Below, piece by piece: positions 5,300-40,281 of a stretch of 64,000 nucleotides of DNA (within the stretch, counting starts at the first letter, position 1; the number at the start of each line of letters is the position of its first letter). The notes beneath the pieces are model-generated. The model was not told the origin of the DNA. It saw only the letters and a program-made list of their open reading frames with translations, and made no database searches. The translations under genes and the position numbers were made by a program. Source of the stretch: Tubulanus polymorphus (Eukaryota > Animalia > Nemertea); the NCBI RefSeq assembly GCF_964204645.1, contig NC_134030.1, positions 3,886,778 to 3,950,777 on the forward strand. Direction: 5' to 3'.

Positions 5300-5850
5300 C
5301 TTTTTCTACCTGTCTCTATTCTATCCCTTTCTGTCTCTATCCTATCCCTCTCTGTCTCTATCCTTTCCCTCTCTGTCTCTATCCTTTCCCTCTCTCTATC
5401 CTTTCCCTCTTCTATCTAACCCACTAACTCTCTCTTCTTCTCTCTCTAACCCACTAACTCTCTCCTCTCCTTTCTTCCTCTCACCACTCTCCTTCCTACT
5501 CCCTCCTCTCTCTCTTCTCTCTCCCTCCTCACTCTCCTTTATCTCTCTTTCTTTTCTCTCTCCCTCTCTCTCTTGTAAATATTGTAAATTTGTAAATAGT
5601 AGTATTTATTTCTCTTTTTGTATCTTTCTTGTAAATATTGTAAATTTGTAAATAGTGGTTTTTATTTCTCCTTTTTTAACTTTCTTGTAAATATTGTACA
5701 TTTGTAAATAGTAGTTTTTATTTCTCTCTCTTTTTTTAACTTTCTTGTAAATGTTGTAAATTTGTAAATATTAGTTTTTATTTCTTTTTTTTAACTTTCT
5801 TGTAAATTTGTAAATAGTAGTTTTTATTTCTCTTTCTTTTCTAAACTGTC
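5300..5850 (+). repeat. CT-rich low-complexity tract followed by AT-rich TTGTAAAT repeats (copy 2 ~39215-39820)
   Basis: Pyrimidine runs (CTCTCT, CTCTGTCTCTATCCT), then ~55-60-bp repeats of TTTCTTGTAAATATTGTAAATTTGTAAATAGTAG. Confidence 0.85.
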
Positions 5851-6302
5851 TCTTTTAAACAATACGTTTTATCAATAGATTTTATCAGCGATTTTTATCT
5901 GTTTTGTCCTGTGGTATGACGTTAAACTGCCTCTTTTAAACATACGTTTTATCAATACATTTTATCAGTAATTTTTAAATACATTCGTAGCATTGATACC
6001 ATTGCAATACATTAGTCCCTCCTCCTTTTGATTAAGTACACCCAATCATTTACTAACAAGTGATGGTTAAATACACTTGCAAACTAGCAGATCAGAGATC
6101 TCAGGACGCAACATCACTTCAATCCTTATTTCTTGACATATACCTGGTAATATAAAATGCTCTTTTTAGCTTGTGACAAAATGTCTTTGATATAAGAAGC
6201 TACTATTTGCTTAACTAGAATCTTCTTTCAAATATTATAATATCACTGGTTTGCAATATACTTAACCCTCATTGGTCGCAGCTGTTACAATCATCTCAAC
6301 AA

Positions 6303-7800
6303 CGATTGAGCATACTTTCCCCTTATTAGTTTGAAGTATAATTCCCCCTCACTGGTTGCAGTTCACTTCATTTGTTGCAGCTATGAACAGTTCACTTCAT
6401 TTGTTGCAGCTATGAACAATCATCTCAATGATTGAGCATACTTTCTCCTCATTAGTTTGAGATATAATTCCCCCTCACTGGTTGCAGTTCACTTTAGTTG
6501 TTGCAGCTATGAACAATCATCTCAATGATTGAGCATACTTTCTCCTCACCGGTTTGCAGTATAATTCCCTCTCACTGGTTGCAGTTCACTATTGGTTGCA
6601 GCTATGAACAATCATCTCAATGATTGAGCATACTTTCTCCTCACCGGTTTGCAGTATAATTCCCCCTCACTGGTTGCAGTTCACTTTATTTGTTGCAGCT
6701 ATGAACAATCATCTCAATGATTGAGCATACTTTCTCCTCACCGGTTTGCAGTATAATTCCCCCTCACTGGTTGCAGTTCACTATTGGTTGCAGCTATGAA
6801 CAATCATATCAATGATTGAGCATACTTTCTCCTCATTAGTTTGAGGTATAATTCCCCCTCACTGGTTGCAGTTCACTTTATTGGTTGCAGCTATGAACAA
6901 TCATGTCAATGATTGAGCATACTTTCTCCTCACTGGTTTGAAGTATAATTTCCCCTCACTGGTTGCAGTTCACTTTATTTGTTGCAGCTATGAACAATCA
7001 TCTCAATGATTGAGCATACTTTCTCCTCATTAGTTTGAGGTATAATTCCCCCTCACTGGTTGCAGTTCACTTTATTTGTTGCAGCTATGAACAATCATCT
7101 CAATGATTGAGCATACTTTCTCCTCACCGGTTTGCAGTATAATTCCCCCTCACTGGTTGCAGTTCACTATTGGTTGCAGCTATGAACAATCATATCAATG
7201 ATTGAGCATACTTTCTCCTCATTAGTTTGAGGTATAATTCCCCCTCACTGGTTGCAGTTCACTTTATTTGTTGCAGCTATGAACAATCATCTCAATGATT
7301 GAGCATACTTTCTCCTCACCGGTTTGAAGTATAATTCCCCCTCACTGGTTCCAGTTCACCTCACTGGTTGCAGTTCACTTTAGTTGTTGCAGCTATGAAC
7401 AATCATCTCAATGATTGAGCATACTTTCTCCTCACTGGTTTGAAGTATAATTCCCCCTCACTGGTTGCAGTTCACCTCATTTGTTGCAGCTATGAACAAT
7501 CATCTCAATGATTGAGCATACTTTCTCCTCATTAGTTTGAGGTATAATTCCCCCTCACTGGTTGCAGTTCACTTTATTGGTTGCAGCTATGAACAATCAT
7601 GTCAATGATTGAGCATACTTTCTCCTCACCGGTTTGCAGTATGATTCCCCCTCACTGGCTGCAGTTCACTTTATTTGTTGCAGCTATGAACAATCATCTC
7701 AATGATTGAGCATACTTTCTCCTTATTAGTTCGCAATATAATTCCCCCTCACTGGTTGCAGTTCACTTTATTGGTTGCAGCTATGAACAATCATCTCGGC
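6303..7800 (+). repeat. 97-bp (94-bp variant) tandem satellite, ~15 units
   Basis: Monomer TGATTGAGCATACTTTCTCCTCATTAGTTTGAGGTATAATTCCCCCTCACTGGTTGCAGTTCACTTTATTTGTTGCAGCTATGAACAATCATCTCAA. Confidence 0.95.
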
Positions 7801-11677: not shown

Positions 11678-13365
11678 TATTCAAAAGAGCTATCCATTGA
11701 TAGCTTTGTGGTGGTTGTATCATTAAAATGGCGCTGGTGTTGAGTCTGTGTACATATTGTAATATATGTCGGTGAATTGGGATTGATTATTTTGTTTCCT
11801 GATCGTCCTTATTGCGACTTTACGTTTTAAATGTATGAATATTCAAAAGAGCTATCCATTGATAGCTTTGTGGTGGTTGCATCTTTGAAATGTCGTTGGT
11901 GTTGGTTCTGTGTACATATTGTATCATATGTCGCTGAATTATGATTGATTATTTTGTTTCCTGATCGTCCTTATTGCGACTTTACGTTTTAAATGTATAA
12001 ATATTCAAAGGAGCTATCCATTGATAGCTTTGTGGTGGTTGTATCTTTGAAATGTCGCTGGTGTTGGTTCTCTATATATTGAATCATATGTCGCTGAATT
12101 ATGATTGTTTCTGCTTCCCGATTGTCCTCATTAGGACTTAATGTTTAGAATTTGAAAATATTGAAAAGAGTTATCCATTGATAGCTTTGTGGTGGTTGTA
12201 TCTTTCAAATGTCGCTGGTGTTGGTTCAGTGTATATATTTTAATATATGTCGGTGAATTGGGATTGATTATTTTGTTTCCTGATCGTCCTATAACGACTT
12301 AATGTTTTAAATGTATAAATATTCAAAAGAGCTATCCATTGATAGCTTTGTGGTGGTTTGCATCTTTGAAATGTCGCTGGTGTTGGTTCTGTATATATTG
12401 AATCATATGTCGCTGAATTATGATTGATTCTGTTTCCTGATCGTCCTTACAACGATTTAAAGTTTTGAATGTATAAATATTCAAAGCAGCTATCCATCGA
12501 TAGCTTTGTGGTGGTTGTATCATTGAAATGTCGTTGGTGTTGGTTCTGTGTACATATTGTATCATATGTAGCTGAATTTTGATTGATTCTTTTTCCTGAT
12601 CATCCTTATAACGACTTAAAGTTTTAAATGTATAAATACTCAAATCAGCTATCCATCGATAGCTTTGTGGTGGTTGTATCATTGAAATGTCGCTGGTGTT
12701 GGTTCAATGTATATATTGTAATATATGTCGGTGAATTGGGATTGATTATTTTGTTTCCTGATCGTCCTTATTGCGACTTTACGTTTTAAATGTATGAATA
12801 TTCAAAAGAGCTATCCATTGATAGCTTTGTGGTGGTTGTATCATTGAAATGTCGCTGGTGTTGGTTCTGTGTACATATTGTATCATATGTCGCTGAATTA
12901 TGATTGATTCTGTTTCCTGATCGTCCTTATAACGACTTAAAGTTTTAAATGTATAAATATTCAAAGGAGCTATCCATCGATAATTTTTTGGTGGTTGTAT
13001 CTTTGAAATGTCGCTGGTGTTGGTTCAGTGTATATATTGTAATATATGTCGATTAATTGGGATTGATTATTTTGTTTTCTGATCGTCCTTATTGCGACTT
13101 TACGTTTTAAATGTATAAATATTCAAGGTGCTATCCATTGATAGCTTTGTCGTGGTTGCATCTTTGAAATGTCGTTGGTGTTGGTTCTGTGTACATATTG
13201 TATCATATGTCGCTGAATTACGATTGATTCTGCTTCCCGAATGTCCTCATTACGACTTAACGTTTAGATTGTAAAAATATTCAGAAGAGCTATCCATTGA
13301 TAGTTCTGTGGTGGTTGAATCTTTGAAATATCGCTGGTGTTGGTTCTGTGTATATATGGTATCAG
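11678..13365 (+). repeat. ~162-bp tandem satellite, ~10 units
   Basis: Monomer begins ATTCAAAAGAGCTATCCATTGATAGCTTTGTGGTGGTTG, with period ~160-163. Confidence 0.95.
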
Positions 13366-14183
13366 CAAATTATCATTACATACGGAGTTGCGTTTTAAGA
13401 TTGTTATATTCAAAGATGCTATTGTTTGATAGCTTAACTTTGGTTCTTTGCACCTGAAGGTTGTCAGGTGTTATTAGAAAACACTAATAGTGGGGTTGAA
13501 TTAAGTTACTGCTTTCATTAGGCAGTCAAAGAAATTGTCCAAAAAGACCAATGAGGTTAAATTACATTGCTGCGTTATATCATGACTCAACTCATCTTCG
13601 TCGCTGACTGAGTGACCCTTTTTCTCTTGCGGAGGCCACCTTGTTTTACCGCAAGAATTCTGGTCCACGCTAACAAAGCTGAATATCGTTCAAGTCTTTG
13701 GGATGACACCCCCTTGAACAACTATCAGCTGGATTCTCCTTTTCTGGATACATGTTAACTGATATTCAATTTTTATCATTTTCTTCTTGCAAAAGTTCTT
13801 AATCAATATATAGGTGTAAAAGAATAATAGGTATGACAGAGTATAAAAGAATACTAGATATAAAAGAATGATGTAAAATAATTATAATGTCCTTTGAACT
13901 TTACATGTCAACTAAACAGTATTGGAAATACTGCTGCCTGTTAATTACTACATTCTGTTTTAAGGGTGATGATTAAAATTTGGATGAATCATTACTTTGT
14001 TCAGTAGATGCGTTAGATAGCCCTTGAAGCAGCTAAACTGGGTCAGAGTGTTTTATCAATGCTGATAAACTCTAAACCTGAGTTAATAAAGCTTCAAAAC
14101 ATTGCAGCCAATTCTTTAAAAGTCTTGTCCATTATAGACTTAAAAGTGAAGATCGATCATCATAAACACCGGTGAAAACAATT

Positions 14184-14262
14184 GACGTCTCACTTAGCAC
14201 CTGACGTCTCACTTTGCACCTGATGTCTCACTTTGCACCTGATGTCTCACTTTGCACTGATG
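14184..14262 (+). repeat. 19-bp minisatellite x4 (TGACGTCTCACTTTGCACC)
   Basis: Direct tandem repeats; also at ~48176-48254. Confidence 0.85.
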
Positions 14263-14559
14263 CATCCATGCACTAACGCAATTGCATGAAATGGCACTAA
14301 ATACATAAAGACACACAGATTGTGTTTATGTATTTTTCAGGGTATACACATGCACACCCGCGGGTCCATGTAGCGTGCTATCTTTCTTTGTTCGTGTGTG
14401 GAAATAATTTGTGATAAGATTAAACACCCATTTTGTAGAGAAAAATGTGAAAGGTTAATGATTAATTGTAAAAGTGGTAGAAATTAAATGTGAAAATATC
14501 AATGTCTGAAATAATATAGTGAAGATTAAGTCGCAGTGATTATAGAGAGATTGTCGTGT

Positions 14560-16555
14560 CAGATCAACCAGATCAGTTGTACTGAGTTATCTCCCTCAAA
14601 GTCAGGAGCAACGTGACAAAGAGTCACAGTGAAAGTTAACAGTTCCAGAGGAACATCGAGTCATGAGTCTGAACTGACTATAAATCAGGTATGATATTGA
14701 AATTGTATAAATCAATTTTCAAAGTCTCAAAATTGAAAATTATTCATATTTTGTGTTTTCTTGTAGCAAATATTGAGAGGTCCACAGAACTGAGTCACCA
14801 GAGATGAGACAATCACCAGCCATCCGTTAGATGAATGTCGCCACTGAGATCAGTGGTACTGATTCATCTCCGTCAAAGTCAGCAAAAAAGTTACAGTCGC
14901 AAAGGAAAGTTAACAGTTCCAGAGGAACGTCGAGTCATTAGTCTGAACTGACTATAAATCAGGTATGATATTGAAATTATAGGGATCAATTTTCAATGTC
15001 TCAAAATTAAGAATTATTCATGTTTTGTGTTTTCTTGTAGCAAATATTGACGAATAAAGTGTCACCAGAGATGAGACAATCACCAGGCATCAGTTAGATG
15101 AATGTCACCACTCAGATCAGTAGTAGTGAGTAATCTCCGTCAAAGTAGGGAACAAAGTTACTGAGTCACGAGGAAAGTTAACAGTTCCAACGGAACGTCG
15201 AGTCATTAGTCTGAACTGACTATAAATCAGGTATGTTAAGATACAGATAACATTGATTTCTTGTTTTAGGAAAAGTCCCAAACATTATGATGGTTTGTTA
15301 CATGTTTTCTTATAGCAAATCGTTAGACACGCAATACCAGAGGAATGATCAGTCATTGAACAGACTATAAGTCAGTCATAAAAATGAAAATTACTCATAT
15401 TTTTTGTTTTCTTGTAGCAAATGTGGAAAGGTTTACCGCAGAACTGATTGTCACCAGAGATGAGACAATCACCGGGCATCAGTTAGATGAATGTCACCAC
15501 TGAGATCAGTAGTACTGAGTCAACTGCCTCAGTCAATCTGCAAAGTAGAGTCACAAAGTTAACAGTTGCAAAGAAACGTCGAGTCATTAGTCTGAACTGA
15601 CTATAAATCAGGTATGATATTGAAAATTACATCAATTTTCAAGTCTTACATTATTCAAAATTATTCATATTTTGAGTTTTCCTGTTGTAATAAGGAAATA
15701 TCTAGAGATGGTATGTTACTACAAGATGGAAAAATACCTGCAGGGATTTACATGAATATTCCTTAGTTGAAAGGATGAAAGAATGGATGAGTCATGAATC
15801 TGAATTGACTATAAATCAGGTATATATTGTAATAGATAGATTAATTTTATTGATTTAGTGATTGTTGAAACTATCCTTTAAAGTTCGTTGTTTGATTGTC
15901 TTGTAGGTGAAAATATGTGAAACATCTAATTAAACACGATGTTGGCTTTGATATTCAGATGGCATCTGTTGACCATTTGAGAATACCTGCGTTGCTGGAA
16001 CTTGTAGAACACTAATGCGTTGCTGGAACTTGGAACTCTAATGCGTTGCTGGAACTTGGAGAACACTAATGTGTTGCTGGAACTTGGAACTGTAATGCGT
16101 TGCTGGAACTTGGAGAACTCTAGTGCGTTGCTGGAACTTGAAGAACTCTAATGCATTGCTGGAACTTGGAGAACTCGAATGCGTTGCTGGAACTTGGAGA
16201 ACACTAATGCGTTGCTGGAACTTGGAGAACTCTAATGCGTTGCTGGAACTTGGAACTCTAATGCGTTGCTGGAACTTGGAGAACACTTATGTGTCACTGG
16301 AACTTGGAACTCCAATGCGTTGCTGGAACTTGGAGAACTCGAATGCGTTGCTGGAACTTGGAGAACTCTAATGCGTTGCTGGAACTTGGAGAACTCTAAT
16401 GTGTTGCTGGAACTTGGAGAACTCTAATGTGTTGCTCGAACTTGGAGAACTCTAATGCATGTTAAGACTTGGAGAATTATTGTCTGGGTGCAACTGACCC
16501 TGTATGTGAACATGTGTGTTCAATTTGAATTTTATTTTAATTTAAATAAAACAAG
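14560..16555 (+). ncRNA. Candidate spliced non-coding transcript or pseudogene built from ~270-bp repeated exon+intron modules, ending in a minisatellite exon
   Basis: Repeated GACTATAAATCAG|GTATGA-type donors at 14689, 14963, 15231, 15612, 15820 and TTTTCTTGTAG-type acceptors at 14766, 15040, 15315, 15417, 15906. Introns are 78-87 nt. The 14767 exon has stops in all three frames. AATAAA at ~16545. Confidence 0.5.
15990..16470 (+). repeat. 26/28-bp minisatellite (GCGTTGCTGGAACTTGGAGAACTCTAAT)
   Basis: Direct tandem repeats; copy 2 at ~49983-50570 is longer. Confidence 0.95.
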
Positions 16556-17523
16556 TTAGAATATCTTTGATTGTTTCTAAAGAGTATTTGATGTTGTTTT
16601 GAGGTGGAACTGAAATGCAGCAGTCAGTTCCGTAGTGTGTTTGAATATTGACATAACATGATGACTGACCTTGATTTATTTGTGTTGACTTCTGTCAGTG
16701 TTTGTTAATTACGACTGTTTTAATTCATTTGTTATTGCAAATACATATTTATTTCAATAAAATGGCATGAGGATCTGTAGAGGAGCCGAGTCAACCTGGT
16801 GTTGAATAAGTAAAACGAGGTGGTTAGTACTTTATAGGTGTGACTTGTGTATTTGAAGTACAGGTACGAGCTTTTAGATTTATTGATTGCATGGTGTTTA
16901 AATGTTTAAATAAATTATATTGATTTTATGGTGTTTGATAATTGGTTGAAGTCTTTGTTTACTTATGTTTACTTATATGATACATGTACGTATTGAACTA
17001 TTGATCACAACTACTGATCTATTCGTGGTTTAGTTGTTCGCTACAAATTGTTTTGTGGTTCTGTAATCTACAGTAGACTCGGCTCTTGACTCGAATTACA
17101 TTAATCAAGTATAGTATCACATTGACTCGACTCTCCCTCTCTCTCTCCTCAACTGACTTGTTTGAATGGATTTAAGTTAGAACTCGGGCTACTCATGGAC
17201 ATGTAAACTAGTTAAAGTCCAGATTGTATTTACACTTTTATAAAGTGTAATGAGAGATAACTTCAGTAAACCTTACAGTCTTACTCGGACTTTCACTTCA
17301 ATTCGTGCCAATCTTGGTCTCAGTTCGTCCCAGTAAGGGTGAGCCGGTTTACTGTAGTGTTTGTCACCTTACCCCAGACCTGCTGGATTACAATCTTATT
17401 TAAAGATGAATATTATAGACAGCAGATTGATACAGTTTTATTTTACAAACAGAAGATGTGTTAGAAATAAACTAATCTAATAGAGGTTCATAGTATACTG
17501 CGAGATGAGTTGATCCCTACACT

Positions 17524-17670
17524 GTACAGAGGTGTCCCGGGTTCGAATCCAGTAATAAATGACGCTGATTCAGAGTGGTCCTGATGCTGAATAGAAGATG
17601 TACAGGGATGTCCTGGGTTCGAACCCAGTAATCATCGACACTGATTCAGAATGGCCCTGATGCTGAATAA
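17524..17670 (+). repeat. Two ~75-bp tandem units, each with a Pol III B-box (GGTTCGAATCC/GGTTCGAACCC); tRNA/SINE-derived fragment
   Basis: GTACAGAGGTGTCCCGGGTTCGAATCCAGTAAT... is duplicated; also at ~51628-51775. Confidence 0.55.
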
Positions 17671-20492: not shown

Positions 20493-20603
20493 TGACGTGG
20501 CGGGAATATTAGTACTTTTCATTGGTCAGGATCAGTGACGTCACACTGTCAGTATAAATACTCAGGTCAGCTGATCCCTCCTTCCAGTTCGGCCATCTTT
20601 CAG
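20493..20603 (+). promoter_or_regulatory. Pol II core/proximal promoter and short non-coding exon 1
   Basis: TGACGTGG (20493, UPRE-type), ATTGG inverted CCAAT (20521), TGACGTCA CRE (20536), TATAAATA (20553), Inr-like CCAGTT (20584), GCCATCTT YY1-like (20592), donor CAG|GTAAGC (20604). Confidence 0.8.
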
Positions 20604-21342
20604 GTAAGCAAACGTCGTCCATTTTATTTATTTCTTTCGATCAAATCTATTTATTAATCTTACTTGTAAATTTCATACATAGACCTTAGGTTTCGCATAC
20701 GGTTTTGTTTAAGACAATTTCAAAAGTTCCGAAAGTTCGGATTATATCATATACGTGTTTAATTATGACATTTCCATTGTGATGTTCTTTTTGCTCAAAA
20801 TTGTCCAAATCGTATTTTTAATATTTAGAAGTAAATTACAACATTTGACTTTCATTTTCGTTCTCGTAAAAATGAAGACGTTATTGTGATTTTATTGAGG
20901 AATTTTATTTAATTTATTTATGAAATTTTCGGAAGCAGTTATTCTGCTGTTCAAATCTACGCGCTAATGCGGCTAGTTGACATGCCTAGGTGTAATACAC
21001 AGACCGCTCAGTCTATTCAACCATGACTCGAATCCATAGAAACCTTTTATTCGAAGCGTCGTTCAACTTAATTCTGGTGGCTTCTATATTTAATATTTAG
21101 AAAATAATGATGCCCAATAATTTAATGTTATTATTATCTAATGCAAACTCGAGTTAGCTATTTCTTAGAATCAATAATTTTCGATTTTCTTGATTTTTAT
21201 AACATTATTGTTTTTACATTGCAGCAGCAGCAGCAGTGACAGCAGCAGTACAAGACAAACATTGATACCAGCAAATTTATTACAACTTCAACTTAAACTT
21301 TAAACGAATTCAACTTCTACTTCAGCAGCAAGCAACACGACC

Positions 21343-21442
21343 ATGTCTTCAAAATATGACATTTTTTCCGGATTGTTAAAGGTAGTGCGCGCCGAGGTCC
21401 TGACACTCGACCCTGTATCCCTCGGCGCGTTTTGTGATTTGA
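21343..21442 (+). CDS. Coding part of exon 2 of a predicted 282-aa protein (MSSKYDIFSGLLKVVRAEVLTLDPVSLGAFCDL-)
   Basis: Acceptor TTTTTACATTGCAG (21224), ACC-ATG Kozak context, donor GA|GTAAGT at 21443 in phase 1, which matches the 31250 exon. Confidence 0.7.
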
Positions 21443-22044
21443 GTAAGTACAAACTCTACTTCATCAAATTCTCGATTATTTTTAGTGACAAGCATCTAAA
21501 ATTATTTGATTTCCAACATCTGAAATTGTTTGATCTCAAATTCACAATTATTTTATCTCAAATCTCCGCATTATTGGATACTAAATTTCAAATTGTCTCA
21601 ATCTTCTATCATCAAATGTCAATTTCTTTCAATCCACTTTTTAATTTCGGAAAACTCAATTTATGTCTCACACTGATTTCATTTCAATTTATTTTGAAAA
21701 TATCATTTTATGTTTCTAGTCTTTTATTCTTTTTCAAATTACTCGACTTAAACTCAATTTAATTTGCTAATAATTCTAATGGTGAATAATTGAATAATTT
21801 TAATTGAATTGAATTGAATAGTGAGTAGAGGTTCTGGTGGATGAGAATGAACTTGAGGAAGTAACTTCATTTCCTGGTTCCTGGTTTTCAAATATCGTCG
21901 AAATTGTGAAATATTCATCATGTTTTTCATATGCAATGCTGTATCCAGTCAATAGAGATAAGTTACAACATAAACAGTTCAAACTAGGCCTCCAGACCAA
22001 TGCACTTCATGGAAAATCCTGATTTATATGTTTAATAAATCAAG

Positions 22045-22285
22045 TAACTGGACTGCGCGGTTCAGTCCATTTTAGTCAGTAAGTAAGCAGACTGCAGTTT
22101 AGTCCACATTTTAATCAGTAACTGGACTGCGGTGTAGTCAATATTTTAGTCAATAACTGGACTGCGCTGTAGTCCATCGTTTAGTCAATAACTGGACTGC
22201 GGTTTTGTCGATAGTTTAGTCAATAACTAGACTGCAGTTTAGACTGCTGTTCAGGAACCGGACAGCTGTTTAGTCCGTATCCAGA
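22045..22285 (+). repeat. Degenerate ~40-bp repeats (TAACTGGACTGCGGTTTAGTCCA), palindromic
   Basis: TGGACT...AGTCCA arms; related motifs at ~25075-25125 and ~28460-28510. Confidence 0.7.
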
Positions 22286-22789
22286 TAACCGTCACATTAT
22301 GGGACCAACTTTTTAGATACCGCTAAAAAGTAGCACTAGTATTTACGGTACTTTCGTTTTTCTCTGCGACTCCAGGATCCAACAACATGTGATTTTCTTT
22401 TTATTAATCATTGATCAAACGTCAGGAAATTCAGGATCACTTTTTTAATTAATTGGTTAAACTTCATTCTTCGTATCTCTAGGTAGTTGCTCGCGACAGT
22501 TTGAGATCCCGAGATTATGGCTGGAAGGAGGTATATCTCACGACTGCTATCATGAGCTTATCTGCGAACTAGTCTCAAGCCGCACCCACTCAATGTTTAT
22601 TTTAGATCTAAACTAGGATATGATGTTTGATACGAATGTCTTTCACTAGCTCGGCTCATAGTCCGAATCTTCATCGTCTATTTGTTGGCGAATCCTAAAT
22701 ATTGCGGCCTTGCGGTAAATAGAGTTTAAACACGATTTATTTCTAACGGATTCATTATTACGGTCAATGGTTGCCGCCTCGTTCTGAGT

Positions 22790-24520
22790 CATTTTAGTTG
22801 TGACCTTCCGCAGGACGTGGTTCTTACTTTAACTGAGCAGATCATCCCGTCTGTGCCTACATTTGTTGCTATAATAACGCCCAGCTGCCATAGAATTCTT
22901 CAATGGTGTATCTGTTAGTTTTTACAAACGCCCAAGATTCCTTGTTTCCTTGTGGACTGCGAGTGACATTAACTACCAGCAGCCATGACACGTATTCATC
23001 AATGAATCGTCTGCAACATCACTGGTTCAGTTTCAATCATCCTTACGTGCCGTTCGTTTCGTGAAGTTTTGGATCGACTATTTCGTCATTTTCGTTGTTC
23101 TTGTACGGAAGTAGATTGATTTGTGTCGTCAACAGTTGCAGACTGAAGTACTCAGTAATTTCTTGCACAAGTTGAAGTTTTCTGCATCGATCATGCAGCA
23201 GATGTCTGTTGGCAGGTGTCTGTTGGTAGGTGTCCATATGCAGATGTTTTTTTTTTGCAGTTTCAGCGTGAAATCATTAGCCATCTCTTCATTTACTTAT
23301 AGGAGGTTTACATGTTTGTTATCAGTCAGCATCCCACATTATTAACATCTCGGACCAGTTATCCAGTCCAAATCGATGAATTTCACCAACAGCACCCCCT
23401 AGAAAGAATTTATGCAATATTTTCAGCTGTTTCGAGGTAATTCCAATCAGAAACATTTGTTAACGCTTTTATCTTTTCCACTCTATTGTGTACAAATCAT
23501 TTCAATCTTTGTCGACCAAATCCAACATTCATGTTTGAGTACATAGATCCATATGTGTTGGTAATTAGCTCGCTATATTCTACTCCTTAACATTGCTTGT
23601 TATTCTTTCCTCACCTTAAAATTTTCGTTTAATTTTTCGAATCTGCAGTTTTACATCCAGGGTAATATACATGAAGCAGCCGATTACAACTTCAGGACAT
23701 GCGTCAGTGAAGATTACAATTTCCGCTTCTTGTTATGGGTCGACAACAAATCGTCTATCCAGTGTTTTCAGTAAGAAATTAACAAGCCAGGTCCCTTTGA
23801 AAAACAGGAGGGTCACATCGTATGTGACAGTCCCTGAAAAAACAGTGGGGTCCTTAAAAAATGACAGACGCGTCTGAGACCCGGGACCTGGCTCTTATTG
23901 AAAACACTGCTATCATCCATCGCTTTTTCGTTACTACATTCAAAGGAATTTCTGATCTTTGTCCATTGGCCCGTTTTTACTCTTCGTCCCCTTCAATGTT
24001 CACTGTCCATTGCTTAATCATAAGGGCTTTCATGGTGCAACGATCCTACTAAGTCCCAAAGGATCAAATATCGATGACCATTTTGACAGAACGTTTCCTT
24101 TCGTTTCTTTGTACTCAATCGACGTATCTTTTTTACATGTATGAATCATGATATTACTTTCCATTTCTTTTTGATTGGTTCAGCATCCTGTTGATCGATA
24201 AATCAAGTAGCACTGTTATTGCGGTGGACCGGTGGTCAACAATTTCTGTCGATTCTTTTTCATAATCCTTATCGCTTGCGGATTCTAGACTAAAGTTTCT
24301 TCAATTCTCTCGAATATCGTTAAAATTTTCTTGTATGTTTTTTAGAATTCCTCCAGCAACGATTCGAGAACTGTAACTTGTTTTTCATCGATATCTTCTC
24401 TGAGGAGTGCTCCATTTTTCTCAACATTTTTTCAGATGTTGATAATAAACATTGTTGTTGTTGTTTCTTCAGTTCTGCCCGAATGGCTTCACCTTCAGAG
24501 GGCTCACCCATCCATGAAAA
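22790..24520 (-). mobile_element. Decayed, internally deleted BEL/Pao LTR retrotransposon (pol remnants)
   Basis: Minus-strand motifs in the correct order: TKGNVLSKWSSIFDPLGL (~24100-24050), EIVIFTDAC (~23725-23695, RNase H), FVHNRVEKIKALTNVSDWNYLETAENIA*ILSRG (~23496-23395), WQLGVIIATNVGTDGMICSVKVRT (22890-22819, DUF5641-type integrase tail). Stops and frameshifts throughout. Confidence 0.88.
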
Positions 24521-26044
24521 TAATACTAAAAAATACTACTGTTGGTTATGACCAGGAATGAAGTTTTGCAGAGAGATGACGAAGTGACGATGTGCAATCC
24601 ATTGATTCTTTACTAAACTGAATTGCTGCTTTATTTCTATATTAAAAACTACAAAAGTATCAGCTTATTATCTCATGGACGGTGCGCGATCGGACGGTGT
24701 GAGCGGAAGTTGCGATTAGCACAGATGTTGCCGCGGGATCCGGATAAGTGCCAGTAACACGCTTATCTCTGTACTGAGGAGAATCATTCACAAAATCGCT
24801 ACTTTTGGTTTACAGTTCCAACTTCTCTTTTTGTCAGAACGTCAAAATTCACTTCTTTTTTTTACTCTCTTTAGTATTTGTATGATTGTAATTAGGTTGC
24901 ACCAACATTGTGTAGGAAACTCAACATGTAATATGCCATAAGTACTATTTATACAGATCAATCTATCCAATATTCTTAATTATTCAGTAAAAATGAATAT
25001 AGCGAAAATCTGACAAAAAAAATTGCTACTTTTCAGCTGCACCAAAGCATACGGTCCCATACAGTGGTTTAGTCAGTATCCGGACCACAGTTTAGTCAGT
25101 ATCCGGACCACAGTTTAGTCAGTAACGAAACTGTGTGATTCATTACGTTCTGAGAACAGATTTTATCAAATTTCCTCTAGCTGTTCTTCAGATAGGCCTA
25201 CCCTTTGACTAAATGTTTTATTTTCAGAATTCTTTTATAAAAAGTATATCCTCCACCGTTATCCAGGCCTGACATTTATCAAGGTCTATCCTGTTTTACA
25301 CCTTACAAGTTCGACAGCGACATATGATATTGTTTTTTCTGTAAACGGCTGCAGCTGTATTCATAGTGAATTATTCCACTGAATGATTCTATACTTGAAT
25401 GGTAAGTAGTGACTTATTTGAAATACTTAATGAATTCATTTGAAAAAGGCCTAAATTCTAAATATCATTAATTGTTCGCGTTTTAACGATGTTTGATTTT
25501 TATAGATAAAAATCTTATTATAATTTGTAGTGAATGGATTTGATTGTATGAAGGTACAGCAGTGGACAGTGTCGTGTGAAATGGTTTTTACACCTGATGG
25601 TTGTTTCTGAAGGTACAGTAGCCGGCAGTGTCATGTGAAATGGTTTTTAACCCTGATGGTTGTTTCTGAGAATAACAGTTGAAGTTTTTCGTTTGATGAT
25701 GAAAATACAGAAGAAATATGAATGAAATTTTTGGTCTCATTTTTCTGTTTGTCATGCAATGAAAATGAATTAGACTTACTTAGCAAAAACCATAGGGAAA
25801 TGTACAGTACTCGAAGGAAATATCACAATTTTTGGAACTAAAATTCGGTGAAAATTCATTTTAGAAAAAAATATTTTCAAATGTATCGCATTTTATTGGA
25901 TTTTTTGCCCTTAATGATACTGTAGACTTCGCTTAAACTGGTAGACGGTCTATATCTGGTATAATCTGTTCAATTCGATGAAATAAAGATGAAATGTTGT
26001 TCTAAATACATATGTTTTGCCTTTTATGGTATTGCTCTGTTCGA

Positions 26045-26325
26045 TGATGATAATAATAACAATATTATGCGTCTGATGTACCGGTAGCCCTAAATCCAGC
26101 AGCAGCTCAGAGCGCTTTACATTTTACGGTTTTATTGCCCCAGCCATTTAATGGTCTGCTGGGGTGAAGTAACATCCGAGCAGCTGCTAGGCGCTCAGGG
26201 GTCATCTATCAGGCCAGGTACCCAATTACTCCTGGGTGCAGAGAGGCAATGAGGATAAGTGTCTTGCCGGGGACACAACAGTAATATACGGGGTTCGAAT
26301 CCATGACGATCTGGTTTCCCAGAAC
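26045..26325 (-). mobile_element. tRNA-derived CORE-type SINE with L2-like tail (copy 2 ~60135-60400)
   Basis: Minus strand reads B-box-like GGATTCGAACCCC, then CORE-like GTTGTGTCCCCGGCAAGACACTT, then ...TGTAAAGCGCTCTGAGC, then a (TTA/TCA)n tail. Confidence 0.65.
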
Positions 26326-27514
26326 GCTTTCCGTATCCCATAAATGTTCACTTCATTTCCGTTTATTCCTAAACCGGTAAATTGTAATGGCTGTTTCCCT
26401 ATATTATAGAATACATTTATGTACTATCAACCTTCTATCTCTGCTAGCAAAAATACATAAAAACATACATACATCTTTATGTATTTTTGCTGCTAGTGAT
26501 TAGGCCTTATGTTCTATTAATGCACACGCATGACTGGTCATAGTTTCCATTACTCAAAGAGGACATCACAAGTGAACTGAATCGGAGGAAAATGTTGCGG
26601 GATAAAGAAACGTGAAATGTCCAGTCTATTGAAGGACTTGTGTTTGTGTGTAATTAGAGAAAAACCCTCAGAGTGCCCATCATTGTTACTTAAAAGCAGG
26701 AAAATCAGTAGAAACTTTGGAGCTCAATAGAGTGAAAACTGTAAGAGATAAAGCTGGTAATTGAAAAGTTTGTAGGGTATGACCCTTGGATAATTTTGGT
26801 GATGATTATTCTTACTGAAAGTGAAGTCCTATGCAAATGAGCTAATTCGCATAAATCATAATCAGTGACCTATTTATTTGAAAACCCCCTAAATTGTAGG
26901 TATCAAAATGAACAAATCGGGTATCTAGCCTCAGCTAACAGCTGACAATGGAATATTCTATGTCTACGGTCAGAAATATATATTTTATGGGTAATTATAA
27001 TTAGTAAATGAGCTAATAATTAAATCATGTGACCTCCGGATAAGTACCCGCTACTTTCAAATGCAAAAAAACTCAAATATTTCGAATAGCAACACCATAA
27101 AAACGCAGCATAAAAACTTACTAATGGGTGCTGCCATTTAATCAAACCATTTAGCGGCAGGTTTCTCCGCTGAATTCTATGCGACTAAACTGCTATAAGA
27201 AATGTCGACGAAAGTCGACAGGGCACTGAAAAAGTTATAGAAGGAATTTGGGGATTCACTACATGGTCAGATTGTATAAAATACAAAGAAATTGATTATT
27301 TTGACCGCTATTAGGCTCAATAAAACTTCATCAATTGATTTTTGCAATTCTTAAAAGCTGGTAACAGCCTAATTAGGTAGAAAAATGAAGGTGCCAAACT
27401 GTAGCGGTTTAGGCGGAGGTTCATGCAATCCAACCGTAAGTTTTAACTACAGCACTCAACCTTACCCTAACAGTTTTCCTAGTGGTAAAAGGGACCCTAA
27501 ATCTCACCCTCACC

Positions 27515-27902
27515 CTAATGAGATGAAAAACGCCGAGATATCGCATTTGCCCCCTCATCCGAGAAACAACCGTTTGCCGCAGCCACAACAATGCACACGA
27601 TCCGCTGCACAATTAATTGCGCGACCCGTGAAATCATATACTGCATCGAATGCACCAAGTGCAACCTGCTGTACGTCGGCCTAACCGGAATGTCTTTACA
27701 AGAACGCGTCACACATCACGTCTCGCGCATCAGAACGAATAATTCGTCTCGCACCACTTCAACCAGGTCGACCACACCTACCAACACTTTCGGGTGTATG
27801 GTCTCCAACACCTACCAGGCTCGACGAGACCGATCCGCGAAGCAGCCAAACGAGACTGGATACTACGACACGAACACGCCCCGAAGCATCAATGTCCCGT
27901 AG
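27515..27902 (+). mobile_element. Penelope-like element 3' fragment, GIY-YIG endonuclease (frameshifted)
   Basis: INCATREIIYCIECTKCNLLYVGLTGMSLQERVTHH...HF...H...WI...PRSIN is the GIY-YIG/CCHH signature of Penelope-like elements. A small deletion near 27745 shifts the frame. Confidence 0.9.
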
Positions 27903-28663
27903 ACCGCCTCATTACAACATTTAATTCATGCTTTTCTTTACAGGGATAACCCGCTGCCCTTGCACTAATGGGGTCTCCTTACCTTCGGTTTGGTCCCGTA
28001 ACCCTTAACTCTAATCCTAACCCTCTGGACCCTCCAGGCCCTAACCCCATCTAAACCCGATTGTTGGATATTTATGTTTATATATCTATATATGGGCAGT
28101 CATGCGTTACTGCATTGGTCGGACATTGTCACGGGTTACCACGGGAGATTTATATAGTCAGTAGAATACAGTCCTTTATTGAGAAAACGTGTTAGTTTTT
28201 TGAGGGAAGGATTTTGCCCCCTTTTTACAGCGTCTTGACACCGATATGAACCAAATAAACCCAATAAATGACTTAATTGTTACTTTTATTAGATTGTATT
28301 ATAATTTGAAGCTGCATTCGCAAAATATCCACTATTTACGCTTAAAAGGTTTGGAATTTAGGGGTGTGTCACGGATGCCAGCCTCCAGCTTTGCTTTTTA
28401 TAAGCCAAGTAGGTCTAACAGGACAGCGGTTAAGCCATTAACTGCACTGCAGGGTAAGTCAGTAACCGGACTGCAGGTTTAGTCCAGTGACTGGACTGCT
28501 GTTTAGTCAGTAAACAATGGGTTGAAGGGCTGCAGCTGTAATCATAGTGAATTATTCTACTGATGGATCCAATATTCAAAATGTAAGTAATATCCTTCAT
28601 TGTTTACTGTTTCTATTGTTTATTCGGTTTCTATTAATAAAAACATGTTTATAATTTGTAGTA

Positions 28664-29047
28664 AAATGGTTTTAAGCCCAGGTGGTTGTTTCTGGAGGTA
28701 CAGCAGCGGGCAGCGTCGTGTGCAATGGTTTTTACCCCGGGTGGTTGTTTCTGGAGGTACAGTTGCGGGCAGCGTCGTGTGAAATGGTTTTTACCCCTGG
28801 TGGTTGTTTCTGGAGGTACAGCAGCGGGCAGCGTCGTGTGAAATGGTTTTTACCCCTGGTGGTTGTTTCTGGAGGTACAGCTGCGGGCAGCGTCGTGTGA
28901 AATGGTTTTTACCCCTGGTGGTTGTTTCTGGAGGTACAGCAGCGGCAGCGTCGTTTGAAATGGTTTTTACCCCTGGTGGTTGTTTCTGGAGGTACAGTTG
29001 CGGGCAGTGTCGTGTGAAATGGTTTTACCCCTGGTGGTTGTTTCTGA
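28664..29047 (+). repeat. 59-bp minisatellite, ~6.5 units (copy 1 only; a related ~2-unit version at ~25535-25670 is in both copies)
   Basis: GTGAAATGGTTTTTACCCCTGGTGGTTGTTTCTGGAGGTACAGCAGCGGGCAGCGTCGT in tandem. Confidence 0.93.
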
Positions 29048-29602
29048 AAGTAAAAGAAAACCTGCGCCCACTGTGAGATACTTGTAAAACTGATGTTGAT
29101 TCTACAAATTCTGTTGTTTGCTGATTGGTCGGTTTCTACTGGTTTTCCATTTCAGTTTAGTGAAATTCTTTTATATAATTGGTCAGAAAACACTCTTGGA
29201 ATTCTGCTATTGTTATTATTTTTTTCCCTTTCGAGAGAGCAAAAGTAAAAAAAGATGTATGTCCTCTTTAGATTCGACTGCTACCATACAGGACGCCGTG
29301 GACATTGTTGTAGTGGTGCCACATCATGTTCGAATGTCAGAAAACCCATTATCACTGTATTGCAGCTATAATTTTTGTGTTGTTATTTATATTATAAAAA
29401 GTTAAGTCAATGAAATATAAGAAAATTTGTCATAAATTAATCAGTATTTTTGGTTTGAAATACAATTTAGGAAAATATTCTTAACGTATATTGTATTTTT
29501 GTGGAAGATATGAGGAACGGGTGATCGTGTTGTTATAGAATGCCTTTCTTCATATGATGATGTCATTTCTAGGCAAGAATTTTCATTGCTTGCAATTTCA
29601 GT

Positions 29603-30006
29603 TTAAAGCCTGCAGCATACGGCATGACATTTGTTTCACCAAAACAGAAAACACGTTTTTCACAAAACGTTTTGAATAAATGTTTTGAAAAAACTTTCAA
29701 TGGACACGGCATAACGAAAAAGCGCAGAAAATATTTCTTGCACCACGGAATCCATGGAGACAACAATGATCTCAGTTATTCACGTCAATTTTTGTAATGC
29801 CATGTGATGCATTGTTGCTCGGTGATTGGTTATTCAGCCATGGATTTTGCAAAACACAACATGCACCGCACATGTGACGAAAAACGTTTTTCTGTTTGGC
29901 GTTTTGTGTTTCGACTCCCCCGCACACGGCATAACAAAACACATCGAAAACGTTTTTCACGAGGAGAAAACTTTTTTTTTTGCGGTGCCGTATGCGATGG
30001 GCTTAA
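29603..30006. mobile_element. Putative MITE (PIF/Harbinger-like termini)
   Basis: Left end TTAAAGCCTGCAGCATACGGCA vs reverse complement of right end TTAAGCCCATCGCATACGGCA; internal ACACGGCATAAC and AAAACGTTTTT subrepeats. Confidence 0.55.
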
Positions 30007-31249
30007 CTTCATACTCTCGCAGTTAAAATAAAATCCTAAATTTTTATGTAAGGTATAACGTGGCTTAAAGATGAAGCCTATTTTATTTGGAAGTTACCGC
30101 ATTTAAGATGGCTAATGGGCGGCCATTTTTAATTTGTGTATGGGTCCTGCCCGCGTATATGGGTTCCGCATTACTATAATTAATATAATCATAATTTTTG
30201 CACTTGCAAGACCCAATCTGGATTTTTTGTTACAAAGGCACATGTAATAATTTGCTCACATGCGAGCGGCTTGAGATGAAGATATATGTATCTGTATATA
30301 AATCTATGTTGTAATACCATATGAGGTAGACGACTGACTGGCAGCCATCTTCAATTACAAAATCATACATTTTGGCTTAGAAATATAGATTTATTTTATG
30401 TGGAGCTTTGATAAATCAGATGAGAATGTTAGATGATATTGTGTATCGGTAGATGTATTCAAGTCATACTGCCATTCAAGATAATTTTCTTGGCCTATAG
30501 CCTAACTGTGAATATATGTCATATAGAGCAATATGATATCTCATGAATTGATTAATTTTTGCACATCACTGAACCGCATAACGATATTCATCACAAAATA
30601 ATTGATACTCGACCTTGGTGTGGGTAGTCTGAATACCAGTCAATGAATGGGCAAAAATGGGTAGTAGATACTAGACAGGGTGGGTTATTTTGGGGATGTC
30701 TAGGCAAATGCAAAATTCTGGTTGATTATAATCTATTGTTTTGGTGGGTTATTTCATAAAACATCCCTGATATGCCCAGCTGAAAGTTTATAAAGTATAG
30801 TCTTGATTCGTTTCAATATCAAATCGACACTAGATTTTACCCCTACATTTTAGATACCAGTAACTAGCGTAGTACCCGTCCATGGATGGATTGTCATAAA
30901 TGTATTGGATATAGTTATAAAATGTACGCTGAAAGATTCCATTATCTGCTTCATTTATGATCTACTATACCGTTGTCTAACAATACGGTTATTACAGATA
31001 ATGAGAGTGGTAAAATTGTTTTTACAACAGCGTTAGAGGGTGGCAACCATCTCTTGCAACCAGCGACATGACAAATATGGTTGTTTCCGAATGTTCAACT
31101 GGCCCTTCGTTCATTCTTCCATCACATCACCTTCCATTACCTATCAATGAATATCGCCTGCTGCATTATTTTATAGGTTACTTTTTACAGATATCAAAAA
31201 TTGTATGCGTACTATTCGTGATCCTTAATGTTTGGTTTTTTCATTCCAG

Positions 31250-31998
31250 ATTTGGATGTTTTAACAGCAATACAGAGAAACAAGTCTGAAGCAGCCCGCG
31301 AAGCTCGTAACATCTTTGGAGCTTTCGTTAACAGGTGCGTTGACTCCCTTCGCGAGCCTGAGGAGCAAGCTCCTCCTTTAGTTATTGTGCCACCTTTTGA
31401 GCTTGCTCTTCCGCAGGAGGCGGACCCTGCTCCTGTACATCTGGAGCAGGAGGACGCCCCTGCCGTGGGGACCCCGACAGAGGCCCCACCGCTTCAGACG
31501 CCCGCACTGCGTCGGTCGCCCCGTAGAAATATAAATCCAGATATCAATTATGCAATAGGTTCGGGGCGTCCCAAAACAAAAAAGGGCAAACGTGCGGCTC
31601 GTCCTCCTCCACCGAGACAACCAAATTTTGAGGAGGAGAGCAGTGATGAGGAATTCGCCACTCCTGGAGCGACATCACCACCAGGGCCCGCAACACCACC
31701 ACCACCACCACCACCATCAACTGGACCAGCATCAACGATACCACGAATAAGACGAAACAAAAGAAGAATTGAAGAAGAAAATGAAAATAATGAAACACCT
31801 AATATTACGCCCGCCCAGGCGTCAACATCGGGCGCTCCAGTGGGGGCACCACCCTCCCCCGCTGTTGAGCTTATCGCGCGCGGCCCTGGTTGGTCTAAAA
31901 ACATTGATTACCACGATCCCATCAAAATGCTCCGCGATGTTGAAGGGGCCTTTAAAGGAAAATTTCAAATGGTTAAACGTCGGCGAACATCAAAGTAA
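31250..31998 (+). CDS. Terminal coding exon of the predicted 282-aa protein: death-fold-like N-terminus, Pro/acidic/basic disordered tail, C-terminal NLS-like KRRRTSK
   Basis: Branch-like CTTAAT, polypyrimidine tract and TTCCAG| acceptor in phase 1. GC-rich 749-nt open frame. AATAAA at 32192. Frame conserved in copy 2. Confidence 0.78.
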
Positions 31999-32429
31999 AT
32001 CAGCCCCTTCACTTGCCATCACCCGGGCAACAACATCAGCCCACGCACGTCTGCAGATCGGCACTTCTTGAAACTCAGTTTTCCCTTCCTCCTTCGTCGA
32101 TCTGCAGGTCACGCAGTGTTAAATATCTGTCAACACTCCTTGAACCAGTGGGCGTGCAGTCCTTCCTTACTTTTATTTTGAAAAATATAAAAATAAAAAA
32201 CCAGACCTTTATTTAATCATTGTTTTTATGGAGTTTTTACGGTTTCTCCAAAAAAATTTAAAATGATACAAATATAAAAAAATTCATGATCATTTCATCA
32301 ATTTATTTATTTTTTGGATTAAAAGAAATTTTTTTCCATCATCTCCCATTCTCATTCATATACATTTTAAATCATTTATTTATTTATTTTTTTGACTGTA
32401 CGTCCCACTGTGTTCCATACCATTTTTGC

Positions 32430-37986: not shown

Positions 37987-40281
37987 GTACATATCAACAC
38001 ATAAATAGCCAAACATTATAGGCGGCATTATTATTGGGAGGTTCACCTGGCCTAATATACTGCGCGGTAAAAAAACCACTCTTTCTGTGGTTTATAGTAC
38101 CAGTAATTGATGATCATCGAGTGAGTGATTGGCCTGGCCCAGTTATTCCAATTGGAAATCACTTTGGTTTCTGATTATGATTGGTATAAAATATTTCATC
38201 AAATCGATTGACACATTTTATCAGTACTAACACTACTTGTACGTATTTTAGATTTGTAAATAGCTTTTTATTTATCTTTCTTTTATTTTATATTATATAT
38301 TATTTTATATTCTTTTCTTTTATTTCATATTGTATTTCTTTTTAGATTTTTAATTGATTTCGATTTCTTATTGTAAATATTTTTTAGATATCCTTTTAAC
38401 TTGGGATTGTTAATGATTATTTAAACTTTTGAAAAATAATTTTAAAACTTTTAAATTTTCTTAACTTCATAATATCTATAAATCGAATAGGACTATTTTA
38501 GTGAAAATTTTGATGTAGATTTAATTGATGATTAATATTTTTAATTTTATTGAATAATTTTAGTATTCAAAACAACAGAATGAATGCATTCCATCTTAGT
38601 TTGATACTGATATTTCTTTTCACTGGTTTTTCATTGACTCATGTCGAATCTATTGTTTTAGCCACATTTGTACCTATAAGTTTGGATTAGCCCTGCCTCC
38701 TTGACATTGCTGATGGTTGATTTCAGATTTTCAGCGTCTGATAACATTTGGTATTAATTCAATGCTACGTTCTGTTTTGTTGGTTTTATTTCATATGAAC
38801 ATTTATTAAAGATGACCTTTGTCGAATACTTAGTAGTGCAGAGGTTAAAATAATTATAGATTTTATAGAATTGTCAAAAATACTGTACCTAGTAACATAT
38901 GAGTAGTGTTGCTAGTGTACCTCTATTTACAAGTTGTCCTGTGGTATGACGTTAAACTGCCTCTTTTAAACAATACGTTTTATCAATACATTTTATCAGT
39001 GATTTTTATCTGTTTGTCCTGTGGTATGACGTTAAACTGCCTCTTTTTAACAATACGTCTTATCAATACATTTTATCAGTGATTTTTATCTGTTTGTCCT
39101 GTGGTATGACGTTAAACTGCCTCTTTTTAACAGTTTTTATCATTTTTTATCGTTTTTACCCATATGTTTTATTGTTTTTACCCATATGTTTTATCATTTT
39201 TATCACCCCTTCTTTTTCTACCTGTCTCTATTCTATCCCTTTCTGTCTCTATCCTATCCCTCTCTGTCTCTATCCTTTCCCTCTCTGTCTCTATCCTTTC
39301 CCTCTCTCTATCCTTTCCCTCTTCTATCTAACCCACTAACTCTCTCTTCTTCTCTCTCTAACCCACTAACTCTCTCCTCTGCTTTCTTCCTCTCACCACT
39401 CTCCTTCCTACTCCCTCCTCTCTCTCTCTTTCTCCCTCCTCACTCTACTTTCTCTCTCTTTCTCTTCTCTCTCCCTCTCTCTCTTGTAAATGTTGTAAAT
39501 TTGTAAATAGTAGTATTTATTTCTCTTTTTGTATCTTTCTTGTAAATATTGTAAATTTGTGAATAGTGGTTTTTATTTCTCTTTTTTTAACTTTCTTGTA
39601 AATATTGTACATTTGTAAATAGTAGTTTTTATTTCTCTCTCTCTCTCTCTCTTTTTAACTTTCTTGTAAATATTGTAAATTTGTAAATATTAGTTTTTAT
39701 TTCTTTTTTTTAACTTTCTTGTAAATTTGTAAATAGAAGTTTTCATTTCTCTCTCTTTTTTTAACTTTCTTGTAAATATTGTAAATTTGTAAATAGTAGT
39801 TTTTATTTCTCTTTCTTTTCTAAACTGTCTCTTTTAAACAATACGTTTTATCAATAGATTTTATCGGCGATTATTATCTGTTTTGTCCTGTGGTGTGACG
39901 TTAAACTGCCTTTTTTAAACATATGTTTTATCAATACATTTTATCAGTAATTTTTACATACATTCGTAGCATTGATACAATTACAAAACATTAGTCCCCC
40001 CTCCTTTTGATTTGATATTTGAAAGAAGATTCTAGTTAAGCAAATAGTAGCGTCTTATATCAAAGACATTTGTCACAAGCTAAAAAGAGCATTTTATTTT
40101 ACCAGGTATATGTCAAGAAATAAGGATTGAAGTGATGTTGCGTCCTGAGATCTCTGATCTGCTAGTTTGCAAGTGTATTTAACCATCACTTGTTAGTAAA
40201 TGATTGGGTGTACTTTACTATCACTGGTTTGCAATATACTTAACCCTCATTGGTTGCAGCTGTTACAATCATCTCAACAAC

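Follow-up and report, generated by a model that had tools for sequence, protein, structure and literature searches.

A predicted spliced gene in a 34-kb tandem unit

We analyzed a 64,000-nucleotide stretch of DNA from the palaeonemertean Tubulanus polymorphus (contig NC_134030.1, positions 3,886,778 to 3,950,777), which we call the window and number from its first letter. The window is AT-rich eukaryotic DNA, with a GC content of 0.28-0.43, and self-comparison showed that it contains two copies of a unit of about 34.1 kb. One complete unit extends from 19642 to 53750, and the junction between neighboring units lies at about 19641/19642. A preliminary description had proposed that both copies carry an intact spliced gene for an unrecognized protein of 282 amino acids. 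The coordinates, splice sites and phase-1 junctions of that model all match the sequence, and we describe the gene as it stands in copy 1. We infer its transcription, its exact 5′ end and its exon junctions from conservation among related copies. All features of the gene lie on the forward strand.

Upstream of the gene is a conserved promoter (20498-20559), which we read by eye. It combines an E2F-like TGGCGGGAA (20498-20506), an ATTGG that represents a CCAAT box on the opposite strand (20521-20525), a palindromic cAMP response element (CRE) TGACGTCA (20536-20543) and a TATAAAT (20553-20559). All four elements are retained in 17/17 aligned paralogues, and the 141-bp segment of promoter and exon 1 recurs at about 33 dispersed places with 88-96% identity. 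Exon 1 is noncoding (20585-20603). We placed its start about 30 nt past the TATA box, which makes it just ~20 nt long if that box serves. Its donor, CAG/GTAAGC, follows directly after 20603 and is kept as GT(A/G)AG in each of the 17 paralogues. Intron 1 (20604-21224) ends in the acceptor TTTTTACATTGCAG, with the last base of its TTGCAG at 21224; this acceptor, too, is retained in all 17 paralogues.

Exon 2 (21225-21442) begins with a 5′ untranslated region (UTR) that contains a CAG repeat. Its coding part (21343-21442) opens with the ATG at 21343 and supplies 33 codons plus one base, the A at 21442, so that it ends in phase 1 at a GTAAGT donor (21443). Intron 2 (21443-31249; 9,807 nt) includes a 35-bp minisatellite at 22040-22242 and terminates in a pyrimidine tract and an AG at 31248-31249. 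The coding part of exon 3 (31250-31998) adds two bases, 248 codons and a TAA stop (31996-31998), which brings the total coding sequence to 100 + 749 = 849 nt. Within the 3′ UTR (31999-32205) are a 10-bp inverted repeat, CTGCAGATCG...CGATCTGCAG, and an AATAAA signal (32192-32197). The exons have a CpG observed/expected ratio of about 0.9, a level that would fit a gene left unmethylated in the germline. In many invertebrates such a status accompanies restricted rather than housekeeping expression, and it may weakly hint at restricted expression here; expression in the germline or linked to the cell cycle is a guess, prompted by the E2F-like, CCAAT, CRE and TATA elements of the promoter.

Two unspliced readings were rejected. 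The 256-aa open reading frame (ORF) that starts at an ATG at 31228 loses this codon in four of the seven tandem copies described below and in many paralogues. The 139-aa ORF that begins in exon 2 and continues into the intron lacks conservation, since many paralogues reach a stop 11 codons beyond the exon-2 donor.

Copy 2 has the same organization. Its promoter and exon 1 (54590-54713) lie within a segment that is 100% identical to that of copy 1 (C6:3941367-3941507, C6 being the contig that carries the window). Exon 2 (55338-55551) has its ATG at 55452 and its donor at 55552, and the coding part of exon 3 (62226-62974) again contains 248 codons, with the TAA at 62972-62974. Intron 2 measures 6,674 nt compared to 9,807 nt in copy 1, and the extra length comes from an insertion of about 3.5 kb that only copy 1 carries (27328-30843, from the self-comparison). 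This insertion includes a 59-bp satellite (28664-29046, located with Tandem Repeats Finder) and an ORF (27591-27902) with a GIY-YIG endonuclease fragment (Pfam E = 1e-4). Such fragments are typical of Penelope-like retroelements, and we regard this one as a Penelope-like remnant. The preliminary description had also spoken of frameshifted transposable elements (TEs) beside the gene, a statement that was checked for this single remnant.

The two coding sequences are separated by five synonymous changes, an L>I replacement in exon 2, R>K and I>K replacements in exon 3, and two 3-nt indels (GAG and CCA), exactly the differences that had been listed before. The signal of constraint from these two copies alone is thin. 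The case for constraint rests on the seven copies of the array and on the paralogues.

The gene is intact in all seven units of a macrosatellite

Searches with the exon-3 protein, with exon 2 and with the promoter each located seven copies on contig C6, at intervals of 27.8-34.1 kb. Together these copies form a head-to-tail array of 217.8 kb (C6:3874689-4092518). The homology at its left and right ends stops at the same unit coordinate, about 19641, and the array therefore contains exactly seven units. Exon 2, exon 3, the splice sites and the promoter are intact in 7/7 units, and the units diverge from each other by 2-3%. Internal tandem repeats with periods of 28, 35, 62, 74, 97, 153 and 162 bp make up about one quarter of each unit. 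Outside these satellite arrays, the unit has no open frame of at least 120 aa other than exon 3, and the remaining long frames are translated satellite or read-through from exon 2. The array thus has what marks a gene-bearing macrosatellite, namely at least three multi-kilobase units in head-to-tail order with a complete open gene in each. The proposal that the gene is kept intact in its repeat units holds for all seven units, each 28-34 kb long, of a real macrosatellite.

A second array lies on the minus strand of the same contig (C6:2048099-2135487), with a spacing of 38-45 kb. It shares window positions 14780-17606 at 93-97% identity and retains the promoter (80%) and exon 2 (~50% at the amino acid level) only as faint remnants. 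This array is possibly a sister macrosatellite from which the gene was lost.

The array gene belongs to a dispersed family

The preliminary description had dealt with the gene inside the tandem unit. Further copies exist elsewhere: in a search of the 268-Mb genome, the exon-3 protein matches at 95 places. Sorted into loci, these comprise approximately 44 intact full-length exon-3 frames (7 on C6, ~26 of a type that we call A and ~11 of type B) and about 10 loci that are decayed or fragmentary. The gene is thus one member of a dispersed family, with about 45 copies distributed over at least 10 contigs and found in both orientations.

The anatomy of the gene is preserved across this family. The exon-2 peptide could be located at about 43 places. 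Type-A copies are accompanied by exon 2 and by the promoter/exon-1 segment, in the same orientation and at a spacing of ~0.85 kb, and the distance from exon 2 to exon 3 is a constant 5.7-6.8 kb in about 30 type-A units. Every exon-2 locus that we fetched (30/30) retains the ATG, the 33-codon frame, the phase-1 A and GTAAGT. Among the fetched exon-3 loci with a recognizable acceptor, all 27 have the AG at the same position and 26 have open frames. Frequent frame disruption among copies, which the preliminary description had said would count against a gene, is not what we found: frames are open in 7/7 array copies and in these 26 of 27 loci. The 11 intact type-B genes also retain the exon-3 acceptor and its phase.

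Homology between copies extends well beyond the exons. The paralogues align colinearly over both introns (their intron 2 measures 5.7-6.8 kb), over the 74-bp satellite that follows the gene, over several kilobases of downstream sequence and over the segment corresponding to 3289-6387. Another segment, 13365-17375, is colinear in type-B and some type-A copies. From these alignments, each gene lies in a conserved colinear block of at least 20-30 kb, and the C6 array is a local amplification of one such block.

Family members lie mostly in distal chromosome regions. The telomere repeat of this genome is TTAGGG. Contig C1 ends near 32.06 Mb, and its copies are distal, at 0.42-1.35 Mb and 30.5-31.56 Mb; many further copies are also near contig ends.

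We considered that the ~30-kb block might be a giant mobile or passively mobilized element, with the ORF as cargo or accessory gene and the copy number produced by transposition. The distribution of some 45 copies over at least 10 contigs in both orientations, with noncoding homology and colinearity over at least 20-30 kb, would fit such an element. Protein searches found no relatives outside this genome, and the copies are enriched near chromosome ends, where repeats accumulate. However, the 34-kb unit contains no transposase, reverse transcriptase, integrase or other recognizable ORF of at least 75 aa, and its sole recognizable ORF, the GIY-YIG remnant, was inserted into one copy only. Inverted or LTR-like terminal repeats of at least 300 bp (LTR, long terminal repeat) are absent from the window, and the 5′ edges of homology vary among paralogue groups instead of converging on a single sharp terminus. 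The gene also has an ordinary RNA polymerase II promoter and two introns with conserved phases. We consider a mobile block unlikely. The idea that exon 3 is the ORF of a known TE was rejected: no TE domain was found in it, nothing else in the unit has coding capacity, and we saw no long terminal repeats in the window.

Several further features of the blocks and loci deserve mention. A fold-back of ~370 nt lies at 3796-4169 (37990-38360 in copy 2). At least 15 paralogous blocks retain this inverted repeat, in each case some 7 kb downstream of the gene. Since it does not resemble any of the exons, we rejected the idea that it is a hairpin-RNA copy of the gene. On C8 (15157718-15171173), six open frames, five with 144 aa and all within 128-144 aa, encode only the C-terminal module (residues 194-246) and are spaced 2.69 kb apart, so that these truncated members form a separate small tandem array. 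At least seven copies of exon 2 are mixed with exon-3 fragments within ~5.5 kb at C2:30385662-30391625, which looks like a scrambled or decaying family locus. A tRNA scan found no tRNA genes, and T-arm motifs resembling those of tRNAs (like short interspersed elements) occur upstream of the promoter. A repeat of ~76/153 bp with such a T-arm (GGGTTCGAACCC) is found at 17523-17669, in two copies per unit. This repeat also forms long satellite arrays near several contig ends, including C3:41497-44254 and C2:31659223-31661237.

Selection and mosaicism among the copies

Within the array, the seven copies vary at 9 synonymous and 7 replacement sites, compared with a neutral ratio of about 1:3 (binomial p = 0.0075). 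All three indels among them are in frame, but they sit in trinucleotide runs, where this outcome is mechanically expected. The paralogues provide a longer view. Their block-wide p-distance of ~0.15-0.25 served as background, and against it several segments are more conserved: the 3′ UTR (0.05, the lowest value in the unit), the 3′ half of intron 1 (20941-21224; 0.07), the core promoter and exon 1 (0.08-0.11), the exon-3 core (0.05-0.14) and the C-terminal module (0.11-0.14). More diverged are the low-complexity middle (0.28) and the first 104 nt of exon 3, which differ by 0.46 between the C6 gene and type A; their distance among type-A copies is 0.17. Two noncoding stretches, 20941-21224 and 31999-32146, have the highest conservation of the block (93-97% identity) and exceed the coding sequence. 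An Rfam scan of the whole unit, including the conserved half of intron 1 and the 3′ UTR, gave no match.

The preliminary description had recommended computing the ratio of nonsynonymous to synonymous divergence (dN/dS) across copies. Among paralogues, this ratio is 0.38 in the core, 0.29 at the C-terminus and about 0.5 at the N-terminus, values below 1 that are signs of purifying selection. The core and C-terminus (0.3-0.4) are moderately constrained, the other parts weakly. Even between paralogues that are 15-45% diverged at the DNA level, every indel is a multiple of three and frames of 245-298 codons persist. Divergence in the core and C-terminal modules is lower than in the block around them by a factor of two to four. 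The exon-2 peptide is 79-85% identical among most type-A units. The start codon, the position of the stop and all four splice sites are invariant among the copies compared. The intact copies, the conserved anatomy and this constraint rule out a decaying pseudogene family.

These data also bear on whether the 5′ part of the model is wrong and exon 3 has some other upstream exon, additional small exons within intron 2 or a different first exon. The junctions of the gene are predicted from its sequence, and an exon 1 of ~20 nt depends on use of the TATA box. Type-B genes hold the exon-3 acceptor, and yet we detected no exon 2 for them. Conservation in the 3′ half of intron 1 exceeds that of the exons, and this stretch might be regulatory or a promoter. 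Against a faulty model, exons 2 and 3 co-occur in the same orientation and at their constant spacing in the ~30 type-A units, and the phases (1/1) agree in every copy. Exon 2 is moreover conserved as a protein, always keeping its ATG and frame, and no further conserved open frame of at least 75 aa occurs in the intron. We regard an error of this kind as improbable.

Divergence is not uniform along the gene. The first ~35 codons of exon 3 and the low-complexity stretch are hypervariable and mosaic. In the pair L024/L028, synonymous divergence (pS) falls from 0.46 at the N-terminus to 0.02 at the C-terminus, and the pair L020/L024 has a pS of 0.49 N-terminally but of 0.04 in the core. Because the synonymous sites of the N-terminus are equally diverged, this region is not simply under positive selection. 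The mosaic pS values suggest segmental gene conversion, in which old N-terminal types may have been placed onto homogenized backbones.

Conversion raises the question of whether the ORFs do anything at all. Young duplications and repeated conversion from an intact template could keep nonfunctional frames open in a noncoding repeat, possibly one that serves as a source of small RNAs. The array copies are only 1-3% apart, the mosaic patterns reveal active conversion, the overall dN/dS is 0.4-0.7, protein collections yielded no match to expressed sequence, and a conserved fold-back is present in the same block. Such a process does not readily account for strongly diverged paralogues that keep long frames and indels in threes, for core and C-terminal modules that stand out from their block with dN/dS of 0.3-0.4, for the invariant start, stop position and four splice sites, or for the synonymous excess in the array. 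We judge it very improbable that the ORFs lack a function.

A predicted nuclear protein without recognized relatives

The protein of ~282 aa was searched and folded as separate exon-2 and exon-3 parts. The exon-3 part has an isoelectric point of 9.3, is rich in proline (42/248 residues, 17%) and alternates between acidic and basic segments. Counted in exon-3 codons, it comprises a variable helix pair (1-35), an acidic proline-rich linker (36-85), a basic patch with SGRPKTKK (86-125), an acidic serine cluster (126-140), a low-complexity stretch of prolines and sequences resembling nuclear localization signals (141-190) and the conserved C-terminal module (191-248). Residues invariant in both subfamilies include RCV, PAPV..QE.APAV..PTEAP..QTP..RRSPR, Y..G.GRP and KRA, followed by FEE.SSDE and PAVEL.ARGPGWS.NI...DP...LRDVEGAF.G. 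Using a family alignment of nine sequences, AlphaFold2 returned a predicted template modeling score (pTM) of 0.18 for the exon-3 part. The only confident element is a helix pair at residues 2-33, with a predicted local distance difference test (pLDDT) of 83-87; a C-terminal helix (223-244) is weak, and the remainder is predicted to be disordered.

We found no relatives of the protein in any library tried, in agreement with its earlier description as unrecognized. Pfam returned 0 families for exon 2 and exon 3, and nine family members gave only low-complexity noise. Neither a word-index protein search nor the ESM Atlas produced a credible match, and an exhaustive hidden Markov model (HMM) profile search of 1.84 billion protein representatives gave 0 matches. 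One match in the Protein Data Bank, to Dally-like protein (E = 0.049), reflected low complexity and was discarded. The preliminary description had named a match to a known TE ORF as grounds for doubt, and neither Pfam nor the 1.84-billion-representative profile search revealed similarity of exon 3 to a TE domain.

Its composition does offer clues. The relevant elements are a GRP core with lysines and arginines on either side, the basic runs KRRR and RRNKRR, and an SSDEE cluster. The core motif reads S-G-R-P-K rather than R-G-R-P, and G105, R106 and P107 are invariant in the family. HMGA and other AT-hook proteins are similarly small, disordered and proline-rich, with a GRP core between lysines and arginines and with acidic serine clusters. 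Unlike HMGA, the protein has a single GRP, preceded by SG and not RG, and it has no Pfam AT-hook match and no sequence homology. Based on composition, we tentatively propose that it could be a nuclear adaptor associated with chromatin or DNA.

Discussion

Taken together, the evidence favors a real, selected family of coding genes with one tandemly amplified member, a reading to which we assign a probability of roughly 0.7. The family would be lineage-restricted, made up of spliced, protein-coding orphan genes private to this genome. The original suggestion of a functional gene amplified inside a tandem unit gains from the conserved splicing, the intact array copies and the purifying selection, and "functional" here is to be read as conserved in sequence.

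We envision the following arrangement. The conserved 33-aa N-terminal peptide of exon 2 would lead to the helix pair, whose surface positions vary strongly among paralogues, and the protein would end in the ~60-aa conserved C-terminal module with its basic helix. The variable N-terminal helices might choose a partner, while the conserved basic parts would act as a tether. Family blocks would exchange segments by gene conversion, and on C6 one block was recently amplified head to tail into seven units, which would raise the dosage of one variant.

Several observations weigh against this interpretation. The two window copies are barely less diverged in exon 3 (0.94%) than in intron 2 (1.13%), and dN/dS across the family (0.4-0.7) indicates weak constraint. 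Gene conversion among ~44 copies can help to hold frames open. The 11 type-B members (e.g., L013-L019, L021-L023, L029) have no detectable exon-2 or promoter homologue nearby. Neither the word-index search nor the profile search retrieved a protein or a fragment from collections in which public sequencing runs are represented by assemblies, and if RNA-seq from this species is among those runs, the gene is poorly expressed in the sampled tissues. The functional guess draws on composition, and neither the exons nor nine family members matched the Pfam AT-hook at E ≤ 1.

A more speculative version of the same data would make each ~30-kb block a self-contained conflict module, consisting of a fast-diversifying DNA- or chromatin-binding protein, its own satellites and a fold-back RNA locus. 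The hypervariable N-terminus would then be a recognition helix and the basic GRP region a tether, with the modules spreading and recombining among chromosome ends and the C6 array marking a recent dosage burst of one variant. This scenario recalls the arms races between satellites and satellite-binding proteins, as well as the amplified drive genes and suppressors of flies, and we consider it a long shot.

The preliminary description had likened the locus to D4Z4/DUX4 or to germline amplicon genes. The D4Z4 unit measures 3.3 kb and carries an intronless retrogene, the homeobox gene DUX4. Human macrosatellites such as D4Z4/DUX4 and RS447/USP17 are the subject of reviews (PMC5687341, PMC3018141). 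These two share with the C6 array a head-to-tail order, an ORF in each unit, a distal location and dispersed paralogues. Their units of 3.3 kb (D4Z4) and 4.7 kb (RS447) are about ten times smaller than the 28-34 kb seen here and carry intronless ORFs for a homeobox protein and a deubiquitinase, whereas the gene described here has three exons and an orphan product, and its unit includes internal satellites. With a unit of ~31 kb, two introns and no Pfam domain, the array falls outside the D4Z4/DUX4 type, so that this half of the comparison is loose.

DYZ5/TSPY and other ampliconic germline genes are a better match. In humans, DYZ5/TSPY consists of tandem units of tens of kilobases with a complete spliced gene in each, and TSPY has a NAP/SET domain and is expressed in testis. 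The C6 array resembles it in its large, near-identical units, in having one intact spliced gene per unit and in the related copies elsewhere in the genome. Unlike TSPY, the protein has no known domain, the units number seven and the contig gives no indication of being a sex chromosome. The family as a whole also resembles subtelomeric families, with dozens of copies near chromosome ends, conserved flanks and regulatory parts, a hypervariable coding segment and mosaic histories. The classic families of this kind, shaped by gene conversion, encode surface antigens or adhesins of microbes. In contrast, Tubulanus is an animal, the protein is a predicted disordered one of nuclear type and the variable part has a dN/dS (~0.4-0.5) that stays below 1.

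Amplified families restricted to one lineage turn up commonly in newly sequenced invertebrates. This young, amplified orphan gene family is a real and fairly ordinary case, and by itself it opens no long-standing question. Still, it indicates that gene-bearing macrosatellites are not a peculiarity of vertebrates or flies, as a spiralian genome contains one. A large family of proteins predicted to be nuclear and disordered is also private to this genome, where it evolves through duplication of blocks and mosaic conversion near chromosome ends. Because the coding sequence is split by an intron of 6-10 kb and has no homologues, standard annotation could miss these ~45 genes. They provide a concrete and testable case for the birth, retention and amplification of orphan gene families.

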